From assembly GCF_000400465.1 (NCBI RefSeq), contig NW_008806287.1:30001-62000 (forward strand): a DNA stretch of 32,000 bases. The letters run 5' to 3'. A program made the position numbers and the translations under genes. Of this stretch, positions 3,830 through 13,505 are shown piece after piece; within the stretch, counting starts at the first letter, position 1; the number at the start of each line of letters is the position of its first letter. Below the pieces are notes generated by a model, which saw nothing but the letters and a program-made list of their open reading frames with translations, made no database searches and had not been told where the DNA came from. This DNA comes from Wallemia ichthyophaga EXF-994 (Eukaryota > Fungi > Basidiomycota).

Positions 3830-5071
3830 ATGGTTATGGAATTCAAAGCATTCAGAGGACAACACGATGGTAGTGTTAAGGAGTCTGTCGGACGCGTAGA
3901 TGACATCGGAGACAACGATGTTCTTATCAAATTGACCCACGCAGGTCTTTGCTTCACGGACGTACACCATATTGAATTAGGCAACGCATTGGGACATGAG
4001 CCAACTGGTAACATTGTTGAAACAGGCAAAGATGTTCGCCACTTGAAGGTCGGCGACATGGTCGGATATGGGTACAACCGTGAGTGGAAGTAAACATAAA
4101 GTTATACATTTACTTACCTTCTCAAAAGACGGCTCTTGCGATGACTGCGATGAATGTCGCCTTGGTAATGATACCCTCTGCAATGACAGAAAACTTTACG
4201 GTCAAGTAGACCTCGATTTCGGCGGTTTTGGGGAATACGCCAAGCTTAACGAGAGATTCGTACACAAGATCCCAGAAGGAATGGCACCAGAACATGCAGC
4301 ACCATTGCAATGTGCTGGTGCTACCGTCTTTGCGCCATTCTTAAAGCATGACATCAAGCCAATCCACCGCGTTGGTGTTATTGGTATTGGTGGTCTTGGT
4401 CACTTGGCCTTGCAGGTTGCAAACAAGTGGGGTTGTTCTGTTGGTGCTTTCACTACCTCCGAGAACAAAGTCGCGGAGGCAAAATCATTTGGTGCACACG
4501 ACGTCATCGTTACGAAGCGCGCAGATGGAAAATCATTCGTCCCAGAGAAAGAGGAGGAGAAGTTCGACTTTATCTTCTGCTCCGTCAGCTCACAAGTCCC
4601 TTGGGACGACTACTTGAAAACGACGCTGACAAATTCGACTTTATCATCTGCTCCGTCAGCTCTCAAGTCCCTTGGGACGACTACTCGACTGTCTCAAGGC
4701 TAGAGGTACGATCATCCCACTTGGTGTAGATTTTGGCAAGTTTGAGACCAACAGATATTTCTCTCTCCTCGCTAGAGAGAACAAGGTCGTGACTGCCTCA
4801 GACCACGCGGTCAGATCATCCCACTTGGTGTCGACTTTGGCAAGTTCGAAACTAACAAATACATTTCGCTTCTCGCTAGAGAGAACAAGGTCGTGGAAGT
4901 TTAGTGGCCACCAGATATGAGCACCAGAAGATGCTTGAATTCTGCGCTAGACACGACATCAAGCCTGCTGTCGAGGTTCTTGATCTTAATGAGAAAAACC
5001 TCAACATTGCCTTTGAAAGGCTGCAAAAGAACGATGTTCGTTACAGATTCGTGCTCAAGCACCAGGAGTAG
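3830..5071 (+). CDS. Zinc-dependent alcohol dehydrogenase, copy 2 (tandem paralog); frame broken in this assembly at 4615-4893
   Basis: ATG 3830, intron 4080-4128 at the same position as in copy 1, same Zn motifs, ends ...FVLKHQE-TAG at 5071. Two inserted segments identical to copy 1 (4615-4685 and 4790-4893) plus single-base losses break the frame. Removing them and restoring one base at each junction gives a complete paralog. Confidence 0.85.
4544..4893 (+). repeat. Two consecutive tandem pairs of diverged units (71+71 nt and 104+104 nt); each pair is a copy-2 version followed by the copy-1 version
   Basis: 4615-4685 is identical to 2615-2685, and 4790-4893 is identical to 2687-2790; each follows its copy-2 counterpart (4544-4614, 4686-4789). 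Confidence 0.92.
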
Positions 5072-10095: not shown

Positions 10096-11791
10096 TTACT
10101 CCTCAACATACTCCTCAACACCCTCTTCAACATACTCTTCCTCAATATCCTCATCAATACCAGCAGATTCATATTGTTGGTATTCAGAGATAAGATCTTG
10201 CATGTTTGATTCAGCTTCAGTGAATTCCATTTCATCCATACCCTCTCCTGTGTACCAGTGCAAGAAAGCCTTTCTACGGAACATAGCGCTGAATTGATCA
10301 TGTACACGCTTGAATAAATCTTGAATAGCTGTAGTGTTAGCGATGAAAGTAGCCGACATCTTAGAACCCTTTGGTGCGACATTACATAAAGCAGTTTGAA
10401 CGTTATTTGGAATCCACTCGACAAAGTAGTCAGAGTTCTTATTTTGCATGTTGTTCATTTGATCTTCAACTTCTTTCATAGACACTTTACCGCGGAAGTA
10501 AGCGGCGACAGTGAGATAGCGCCCGGATCTTGGATCTGAAGCTGCCATCATGTTGCGCGCGTCGAACATCTGTTGGGTGAGTTCAGGTACTGAAACTGCC
10601 CTGTATTGTTGTGATCCTCTAGCTGTTAATGGCGCATATCCAAGCATGAAGAAGTGGAGACGTGGGAATGGTACCAGGTTAACTGCCAATTTTCTCAAGT
10701 CAGAGTTGAGTTGACCTGGGAAACGAAGACAAGTGGTGATGCCAGACATGACAATTGAAACGAGGTGATTGAGGTCACCATAAGTGGGTGTGGACAGCTT
10801 GAGAGTTCTGAAACAAATGTCGTAGAGTGCCTCATTATCAATACAAAATGTCTCATCTGAGTTTTCGACAAGCTGATTAACAGAGAGAACAGCATTGTAT
10901 GGTTCAACGACAGTGTCTGATACCTTTGGTGATGGTACGACAGAGAAAGTGGCCATCATACGGTCAGGGAACTCTTCTCTGATCTTGGAAACGAGGAGGG
11001 TACCCATACCAGAACCAGTACCACCACCTAGAGAGTGGGTAATTTGGAAACCTTGAAGACAGTCAGTAGCCTCAGCTTCCTTGCGAAGAACGTCGAGAAC
11101 AGAGTCAACAAGTTCAGCACCTTCAGTGTAGTGACCTTTGGCCCAGTTGTTACCAGCACCAGATTGGCCGTGAACCATGTTGTCTGGTCTAAAGAGATCA
11201 CCGAGAGATGAAGACTTGATCGCGTCCATAGTGCCTGGTTCCAAGTCGCTGTGAATGGTGTTAAAAGTGCCAATTTTCACGAGAATAGGATACATACACG
11301 AGGACAGCACGTGGGACATATCTACCAGCTGAAAATGAGGTGTTAGAAGGGAGGAGATAGGTTTAATTCGTTTGCCCACTTTGAGCTTCGTTGTAGTAAA
11401 CGTTGATACGTTCGAGTTGTCTGGAGTGGGATGAGAATACGTTTTAGGCCGGAGTAAACAGCCTACTCATCAATATCACCTTTGTAGTTACCTGCGCCAT
11501 CAAGACCGTGTTCTTCACCGATTACATCCTAAAATTGACGTGAGTCGGTGGTTTTTAGTGGATAGCAGCCCTACTAACCCAGAATTTGGCACCTGAAGGA
11601 TATTTGAGAGGGGAAATAACGTATATAACACTTTAACCCACCAATTTGATTACCGCACTTGAAGTTTTACTGTCAGCAGAGTACACGTCACTTGCACAAA
11701 ACCAACCTGTCCAGTTTGAAGGTGTACAATTCTTTCAAATAATGTCAGTCTGCTTTCTCCTGGCTCTAGAAATTCCCCACTCTCTTCCCAT
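10096..11791 (-). CDS. TUB2: Beta-tubulin, copy A (7 introns, several micro-exons)
   Basis: Spliced N-terminus [22 protein letters not shown]; GGGTGSG signature; [11 protein letters not shown]; acidic C-terminal tail. Seven GT-AG introns lie in the 5' third of the gene (about 11230-11780). Confidence 0.96.
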
Positions 11792-11960
11792 TTTTAAGCT
11801 TAGATCGACGCGAGAAGAGGACAGTGAGCAGCGCACAAGAAATAAACTAACAAATTTTTATCTGAAATACAACGAAATTTATAAATAACTTTCATTTAAT
11901 TTCATTTATTCTTCAACGTATTGCTGTAATTTCTTTGTTAGATTGTATTTTTAGCGTGAT

Positions 11961-13505
11961 TTATATTCCATCTCCTACCTCATCTTCCATAACTTCTTCT
12001 TCGTAATATTCCTCCTCTTCAACACCTGCATTTTCATATTGTTGGTATTCTGATAGAAGATCCGCCATGTTTGATTCAGCTTCAGTGAATTCCATTTCAT
12101 CCATACCCTCTCCTGTGTACCAGTGCAAGAAGGCCTTTCTACGGAACATAGCGCTAAATTGATCATTGACACGATGGAAGAGCTCTTGGATAGATGTAGT
12201 GTTTCCAATAAAGGTAACTGCCATCTTTGTATCCTTTGGAGCAATATCACAGTGTGCTGTTTGTATGTTGTTTGGAATCCATTCAACAAAGTAGTCTGAG
12301 TTCTTGTTTTGCACTGCTTGCATTTGTTCCTCGACTTCCTTCATTGACACTTTACCACGGAAGTAAGCGGCGACTGTCAAGTAGCGACCGTTTCTAGGGT
12401 CAGATGCAGCCATCATGTTCTTCGCATCGAACATTTGTTGTGTAAGTTCTGGTACGGAGACGGCTCTGAATTGTGAGGTACCCTTTGCTGTAAGTGGAGC
12501 GTATCCGACCATGAAGAAGTGGAGACGTGGGAATGGAACCATGTTGACTGCCAATTTTCTCAAGTCAGAGTTGAGTTGACCTGGGAAACGAAGACAGGTG
12601 GTAACACCAGACATGACCATAGAAACGAGGTGATTGAGGTCACCGTAGTTTGGTGTAGACATTTTAAGAGTCTTGAAGCAAATGTCATAGAGTGCCTCAT
12701 TATCAATACAGAAAGTAAGATCCGAGTTTTCGACTAATTGGTGGACAGAGAGAACAGCGTTGTATGGTTCAACGACAGTGTCTGATACCTTTGGTGATGG
12801 TACGACAGAGAAAGTGGCCATCATACGGTCAGGGAACTCTTCTCTGATCTTGGAAATGAGGAGAGTACCGAGACCGGAACCAGTACCACCACCGAGAGAG
12901 TGAGCGATCTGGAAACCTTGCAGGCAATCGCAGTTCTCAGCTTCGCGACGCGTGACATCGAGAATTTGGTCAACGAGTTCAGCACCCTCCGTGTAGTGAC
13001 CTTTAGCCCAGTTGTTACCAGCGGAGGACTGACCGAAGATCATGTTGTCTGGTCTGAACAAGCCTCCGATTGAGCTCGCTTGCACGGTTTCGATAGTACC
13101 TGGTTCCAAATCGACAAGGACAGAGCGTGGCACGAATTTCTTCTCTGCGGCCTCGTTATAGTAGACGTTGATACGTTCGAGTTGTCTGGATGGAGTGTGA
13201 GGGGAAGTTTAGCTGCGTACACCGCGCCTACTGGTCAATGTCTCCGTAGTAAGCACCTGATTCGTCGATGGCGTGTTCTTCGCTCAGTGTTTCCTAGGCG
13301 CGGGTGTCAGGCATTGGAAAAGCAAGACAGGCGTACGAACCCAGAATTTAGAACCAATTTGGTTACCACACTTGTCAGCGTCAGCTACAGTCACACTAAC
13401 AGCAGTCTAACCCACTTGACCTGTTTGAAGGTGTACGATTCTATCAAACACCAGATTAGCTTCAAAATTAATAGTCGCCGCGTTTGAAACTCACTCTCTG
13501 CCCAT
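11961..13505 (-). CDS. TUB2: Beta-tubulin, copy B (4 introns), tandem paralog
   Basis: Spliced N-terminus [22 protein letters not shown]; GGGTGSG; ERINVYYNE; acidic tail. All four intron positions are shared with copy A. Confidence 0.96.

Follow-up and report, generated by a model that had tools for sequence, protein, structure and literature searches.

The amino-terminal tetrapeptide Met-Arg-Glu-Ile (MREI) of beta-tubulin is a near-invariant conserved motif, rather than a defining feature, and the closest precedents for a residue inserted after its Met1 are found in other tubulins, namely gamma-tubulin and the alpha3-type tubulins of apicomplexans. Gamma-tubulin begins with MPREI and, in human cells, is still read by TTC5 despite the insertion. 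In apicomplexans, insertions in the N-terminal regulatory tetrapeptide have been published for divergent alpha-tubulins (MPREI in Toxoplasma alpha3 and MPGEV in Eimeria), which are specialized, highly divergent isotypes existing beside canonical ones. Here, we analyzed a stretch of 32,000 nucleotides (nt) from the basidiomycete fungus Wallemia ichthyophaga EXF-994 (contig NW_008806287.1, positions 30,001 to 62,000; hereafter the window), and describe two tandem beta-tubulin genes, copy A and copy B, that both begin with Met-Gly-Arg-Glu-Ile (MGREI).

Compared with these precedents, the Wallemia start shares with gamma-tubulin a single small residue between Met and Arg-Glu-Ile, which in both cases permits removal of the Met; however, the residue in gamma-tubulin is Pro and not Gly, and it is ancestral to a separate tubulin family that does not polymerize into the microtubule wall. 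Unlike the apicomplexan isotypes, both of the otherwise conventional beta-tubulin genes found at the Wallemia locus carry the insertion. A Gly among the first beta-tubulin residues is also seen at position 2 of human TUBB4A p.R2G (DYT4 dystonia), but that substitution replaces the essential Arg, whereas in Wallemia the Arg is retained behind the added Gly; the two changes are therefore not equivalent.

The two genes occupy positions 13505-10096 on the minus strand of the window and were modeled manually, with verification by translation (Table 1). In copy A, aaaa-ATG GGA AGA GA is followed by gtgggg and joins to A ATT GTA CAC, while in copy B, aaaa-ATG GGC AGA GA is followed by gtgagt and joins to A ATC GTA CAC. 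The proposal of the initial annotation that both beta-tubulins start with Met-Gly-Arg-Glu-Ile was thus borne out, positions included, by the sequence and by both gene models, and MREI occupies residues 1-4 in neither copy. Among the 60 matches listed of 72 solved chains at E <= 1e-150, all were beta-tubulin chains (E down to 8e-254), and query residue 3 paired with chain residue 2 in every one aligned. In addition, the Pfam Tubulin domain starts at residue 4 of the query. What distinguishes the Wallemia start is a single residue, cleanly inserted between Met and Arg.

The Gly-bearing first exon, ATGGGNAGAGA followed by GT, was found in all six genes of three Wallemia species (W. ichthyophaga, W. 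mellicola and W. hederae). MGREI is annotated for both paralogues of W. mellicola, and the genomic first exons of both read AAAATGGGAAGAGA and then GT. In W. hederae, the first exon is ATGGGCAGAGA followed by GTGGGT in copy B and ATGGGAAGAGA followed by GTGAGG in copy A. As for the Gly codon, GGA is used by each of the three copy-A genes and by W. mellicola copy B, and GGC by copy B of the other two species. This retention across species, accompanied by a synonymous change, shows that the Gly codon is maintained.

Transcript evidence was provided by a 1544-nt contig (L001) from a public sequencing run, a complementary DNA (cDNA) encoding the W. mellicola copy-A orthologue. Its 5' end is the tail of a template-switch oligonucleotide (TATCAACGCAGAGTACATGGGG) and its 3' end is an Illumina adapter. 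The oligonucleotide is followed by 29 nt of 5' untranslated region matching the W. mellicola genome directly upstream of the ATG, and the contig then reads ...GTTGAAA ATG GGA AGA GAA ATT GTA..., with intron 1 spliced out at the predicted junction. The junction is thereby proven at the transcript level for the W. mellicola copy-A orthologue, as is the absence of a coding exon farther upstream. An alternative first exon restoring MREI, the outcome against which the initial annotation had cautioned, was not seen in this cDNA. The corresponding transcript look-up for W. mellicola copy B returned a genome match only.

These observations leave a vanishingly small likelihood that MGREI is an artefact of annotation, assembly or reading and that the true N-terminus is an MREI supplied by another exon or start. 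Suspicion could be raised by the size of exon 1, merely 11 nt, and by the public models of the locus, which are wrong in both W. ichthyophaga and W. hederae. The W. ichthyophaga EXF-994 protein XP_009269181.1 (P0121; in the cluster of W. mellicola XP_006957944.1) is an 883-residue model fusing the two genes: residues 1-445 match copy B exactly and the final 438 match copy A exactly from Cys13 on, with a GAG, GTAGGA site in the copy-B tail (about 11980) joined to copy A exon 3. The first 12 residues of copy A are unannotated as a consequence of this wrong fusion. The public W. hederae model (946 residues) is fused similarly, and both models need correction. However, the spliced, 5'-complete cDNA gives ATG GGA AGA GAA ATT, which rules out an artefact for the copy-A orthologue, and the exon is kept in six genes from three independent assemblies, whose agreement with one another and with the cDNA excludes an assembly error. 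An upstream alternative exon was likewise rejected: no other first exon of the form ATG-Arg-GA, GT occurs on the minus strand of the window, and the ATG is preceded by an in-frame stop at a distance of 6 nt in copy B (TAA) and 69 nt in copy A.

Apart from the inserted Gly, the two genes are ordinary beta-tubulins on every defining feature, the near-invariant MREI start being the sole departure. Both models translate without interruption, all of their introns are 45-54 nt long with GT...AG ends, and the two proteins agree at 365 of 452 alignment columns (approximately 81% identity). The number of introns is unequal between the copies (seven in A and four in B). Both copies contain the Pfam domains PF00091 (Tubulin; E 2.6e-62 and 2.7e-65) and PF03953 (Tubulin_C; E 4.4e-42 and 1.1e-43), and the GGGTGSG nucleotide-binding signature and the T1 loop GQCGNQ (as TGQCGNQIG) were found in both translations. 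The nearest database proteins are basidiomycete beta-tubulins, with W. mellicola XP_006957944.1 as the best full-length match (96% identity to copy A). Canonical fungal and animal beta-tubulins (6tis_B and 1jff_B) are homologous over the full length (approximately 80% identity, E around 1e-254) and share the Tubulin and Tubulin_C domains and the GGGTGSG signature, but lack the extra Gly between Met1 and Arg.

Table 1. Positions of the two tandem beta-tubulin genes, their first exons and their first introns in the window
Feature	Position	Strand	Description
Copy A exon 1	11781..11791	(-)	ATG GGA AGA GA, 11 nt; inserted Gly codon GGA at 11788-11786
Copy B exon 1	13495..13505	(-)	ATG GGC AGA GA, 11 nt; inserted Gly codon GGC at 13502-13500
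Copy A intron 1	11732..11780	(-)	49 nt, GTGGGG...AAAG; phase 2, within Glu codon
Copy B intron 1	13441..13494	(-)	54 nt, GTGAGT...ATAG; phase 2, within Glu codon
Beta-tubulin copy B, start to stop codon	11961..13505	(-)	5 exons, 4 introns, 450 amino acids
Copy B exons	13505-13495, 13440-13416, 13370-13341, 13293-13232, 13185-11961	(-)	gene model
Beta-tubulin copy A, start to stop codon	10096..11791	(-)	8 exons, 7 introns, 450 amino acids
Copy A exons	11791-11781, 11731-11707, 11657-11642, 11592-11579, 11528-11467, 11420-11380, 11328-11298, 11248-10096	(-)	gene model

The Wallemia paralogues were also compared with 22 other fungal and animal beta-tubulins, and no sign of broader N-terminal or protein remodeling was observed relative to these sequences. 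The only other near-invariant site altered in both paralogues is residue 187 (NAVLSV; W. mellicola copy-A numbering), where a Thr that is invariant in the 22 other sequences is replaced by Val. Structure prediction with AlphaFold2 for the W. mellicola orthologue, based on an alignment of 24 sequences, gave a model of low confidence (mean predicted local distance difference test score, pLDDT, 43.9), and no structural conclusion was drawn from it.

The history of the insertion can be approached through the relationship of the two copies. Orthologues are 94-98% identical among the three species, as compared with 81% between A and B, indicating that the duplication predates the split of these species. 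When the Wallemia copies were placed in a neighbor-joining tree together with 22 other fungal beta-tubulins, A and B formed sister groups in 68 of 100 bootstraps. At 4-fold sites, the distance between the copies is 0.53 substitutions per site. Perfectly identical tracts are nevertheless present at positions 458-554 (97 nt), 718-767 (50 nt) and 1183-1248 (66 nt) of the coding sequence, located for example at about 12830-12730 in B and 10990-10890 in A; their identity in spite of this distance points to gene conversion between the tandem copies. The simplest and most likely history would therefore be one insertion before or near the tandem duplication, or its spread by conversion, and a single origin within Wallemia is most probable. 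The insertion has most likely been kept since before the living Wallemia species diverged. With gene conversion acting between them, however, the two copies are not independent witnesses of selection. The initial annotation had taken the differing synonymous Gly codons as an argument for a real, selected feature; the feature is indeed real and kept across species, but as an argument for selection the codon difference is weak on its own, given gene conversion.

How the inserted Gly might affect the mature protein can be predicted from general rules of N-terminal processing. Methionine aminopeptidase removes the initiator Met when the second residue is small (Gly, Ala, Ser, Thr, Cys, Pro or Val), and a Met-Arg start is not cleaved. 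The second residue is Gly in both copies. Translation would start at the AUG, which lies in an A-rich context, and Met1 would be removed co-translationally before the small Gly2, whereas the canonical Met-Arg start would keep its Met. The mature chain would then begin with Gly-Arg-Glu-Ile, equal in length to the canonical Met-Arg-Glu-Ile, and the net effect would be a change of Met1 to Gly, with Arg-Glu-Ile and strand S1 in their normal register. Under the aminopeptidase rule, it is plausible that Met removal leaves Gly in the Met1 position. An N-terminal Gly also brings N-myristoylation to mind, for which the consensus comprises Gly2, an uncharged position 3 and a small or hydroxyl residue at position 6. 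The sequence M-G-R-E-I-V breaks this rule with Arg at position 3 and Val at position 6, and myristoylation of the Wallemia beta-tubulins is thus unlikely.

The initial annotation went further and suggested that the insertion breaks the MREI nascent-chain signal, allowing Wallemia beta-tubulin mRNAs to escape TTC5-type autoregulation. In animal cells, the signal is the N-terminal tetrapeptide, substitutions of Arg2 abolish regulation, and MREI is described in the literature as beginning all beta-tubulins; an altered start could from this perspective be expected to matter. However, the residues contacted by TTC5 in nascent tubulin are Arg2, Glu3 and Ile4 (2026 preprint), and all three are retained as Arg3-Glu4-Ile5 in both Wallemia copies, that is, following Met1 plus one residue. 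Human TTC5 also binds ribosomes making gamma-tubulin, whose MPREI has a one-residue insertion after Met; gamma-tubulin Arg3, Glu4 and Ile5 were modeled in the usual TTC5 pocket, where Arg2, Glu3 and Ile4 sit, and R3H abolishes regulation (2026 preprint). In addition, GREI would have the canonical spacing from the N-terminus once Met is removed. TTC5-dependent autoregulation has been shown in animal cells only, the CNOT10/11 effector module is absent from Saccharomyces cerevisiae and Schizosaccharomyces pombe, and a late evolutionary origin has been stated for the components of the pathway; in fungi, there may be no control of this type from which to escape. Fungi are not mentioned in several papers and reviews on TTC5 that we examined. 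Given the retained Arg, Glu and Ile and the reading of MPREI by human TTC5, escape from MREI-based control does not follow from the insertion, and we regard it as highly improbable. Rather, the retention of the determinants read by TTC5, together with the compatibility of TTC5 with a one-residue offset, suggests to us a tolerated change and not a regulatory switch.

The occurrence of MGREI outside Wallemia is informative in this respect. Among the N-termini of roughly 100 full-length beta-tubulins fetched, 91 were MRE, and MGRE was present only in Wallemia and one other. A search with the 18-residue N-terminal motif returned two cluster representatives among 5.8 billion (Wallemia and Rhodosporidiobolus poonsookiae), and one contig was obtained when 241 million metagenome records were scanned for MGREIxHxQxGQCGNQ without introns; as these are exact-word and exact-pattern searches, variants, non-representative cluster members and genes with early introns would escape them. 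Our literature search found no paper in which 'MGREI' concerns tubulin and no Wallemia paper treating the tubulin N-terminus. MGREI therefore did not turn out to be common and already described in fungi, as the initial annotation had allowed it might; it is rare, and the Wallemia start, although present in public protein records, is not discussed in the searched literature.

In R. poonsookiae, the predicted gene reads ATG GGA AGG GAA ATC GTA CAC CTC CAG ACT GGC CAG and then gt, all in one exon. Its congeners have MREI in all six models in which the N-terminus is kept, and their start is ATGCG followed by a GT-intron. The R. poonsookiae site homologous to the congener start (BAABUT010000016.1, within 1300-1560 of the extract) reads CCGTGTGAGT, without ATG, and the predicted ATG aligns with the 3' end of the old congener intron (ATGGGAAG, then GGAAATC). 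On this predicted gene model, MGREI in R. poonsookiae looks like a start-codon relocation. The single metagenome record, JGI contig Ga0314766_1024380, is cDNA-like and 1853 nt long, with a beta-tubulin at 147-1490, Gly-Arg codons GGT CGA and an in-frame TAA four codons upstream of the ATG. None of the fetched tubulins is more than about 80% identical to its protein, which groups with a tremellomycete in our tree. This environmental basidiomycete transcript and R. poonsookiae represent independent origins of MGREI. Within Basidiomycota, the rare MGREI start thus has a minimum of two or three separate origins.

Two further kinds of unusual N-termini were encountered in these searches. In Dioszegia hungarica (JAKWFO010000005.1, 801-880 of the extract), the beta-tubulin gene reads ATG GCT CCC GGA TCA GTG CGC GAA ATT, with an annotated start MAPGSV-REI and GTG in place of the canonical Met codon; the protein either carries five extra residues at its N-terminus or is initiated at GUG. 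Short eukaryotic ENA metagenome fragments (P0213, P0218-P0224 and P0242) have beta-tubulin-like N-termini with Pro after Met, as in gamma-tubulin, and such MPREI beta-like fragments surfaced through a 41-residue N-terminal query (matches of at most 72 residues).

Taken together, our analyses favor a genuine, fixed insertion of one Gly codon after the initiator ATG in both tandem Wallemia genes, representing a tolerated change rather than a regulatory switch, to which we assign a rough probability of 0.6. At the extreme N-terminus, the added Gly is most probably tolerated and close to neutral, although its neutrality is our inference. Tolerance is supported by the independent appearance of MGREI in the environmental basidiomycete transcript and in the predicted R. 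poonsookiae gene. Several points weigh on the other side. The long persistence of the insertion in two paralogues and three species would also be expected if a function were positively maintained; the RNA evidence is limited to the W. mellicola copy-A orthologue and covers neither W. ichthyophaga nor copy B; the 68% support for the monophyly of A and B may be inflated by gene conversion; and removal of Met1 is a prediction from sequence, as would be any acetylation of the resulting Gly end.

The first of these points leads to the hypothesis that the replacement of a Met-retaining end by a Met-excised Gly end is adaptive, altering tubulin stability, its handling by folding factors or its dynamics in an extreme xerophile and halophile. 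This could occur by creating a substrate for NatA acetylation or by avoiding an oxidizable or recognizable Met1. Such a hypothesis would account for the strict retention in both paralogues of three species even though the copies are 0.53 substitutions apart per 4-fold site and the codon itself has changed synonymously between GGA and GGC, and for the recurrence of Gly, and no other residue, in independent lineages. However, the other MGREI lineages are not known halophiles, the Wallemia proteins show no co-varying remodeling, and the recurrence of Gly is explicable by start-codon relocation or local sequence; we therefore consider adaptive processing unlikely. An explanation at the RNA level is also conceivable, in which a GGN codon is selected for providing a +4 G (AAAAUGG) or for altering the 11-nt exon, thereby aiding initiation or splicing, with the amino acid as a passenger. 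The start contexts of R. poonsookiae, the environmental transcript, the cDNA and all six Wallemia genes do share an A-rich stretch at -3..-1 followed by ATGGG. The constancy of Gly alongside a variable third codon base is compatible with selection at either level, but canonical fungal beta-tubulins are highly expressed without a +4 G, and this explanation appears very unlikely to us. A tolerated insertion thus remains our preferred interpretation.

With regard to the surroundings of the locus, the neighborhood (an alpha/beta hydrolase, a threonine synthase, the two tubulins and an EamA transporter) is syntenic with that of W. mellicola. Elsewhere in the window, matches to zinc-type alcohol dehydrogenase domains were obtained for each of two neighboring open reading frames, at 2058-2969 and 4068-4703 (+), pointing to a tandem pair or a single intron-split gene.

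The insertion spans the whole genus and affects both of the otherwise conventional beta-tubulin genes found at the locus; it amounts to a minor and hitherto undescribed variation on a very familiar protein. On the practical side, polymerase chain reaction and barcode primers as well as annotation pipelines that assume an ATG-CGN/AGR-GAR start will miss the Wallemia first exon. More generally, Wallemia illustrates that the extreme N-terminus of beta-tubulin can change without loss of an essential protein, and it offers a ready-made natural variant for asking whether the constraint on MREI is structural or regulatory and whether a Met-excised Gly-Arg-Glu-Ile is equal to Met-Arg-Glu-Ile. A broader conjecture, which we think quite unlikely, is that MREI is kept mainly by a TTC5-type nascent-chain reader that basidiomycetes such as Wallemia have lost or never had, or else that the Gly end is a new handle for tubulin control. 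If the reader was lost or never present, the N-terminus would be free for repeated remodeling, as in the MGREI of Wallemia, of the environmental tremellomycete-like transcript and of R. poonsookiae and the MAPGSV-REI of Dioszegia. If either part of this conjecture were true, Wallemia would be a natural system for studying the role of MREI outside animals, and the importance of the insertion would grow should a reader of the TTC5 type exist in Wallemia or the Gly end be shown to have a function.

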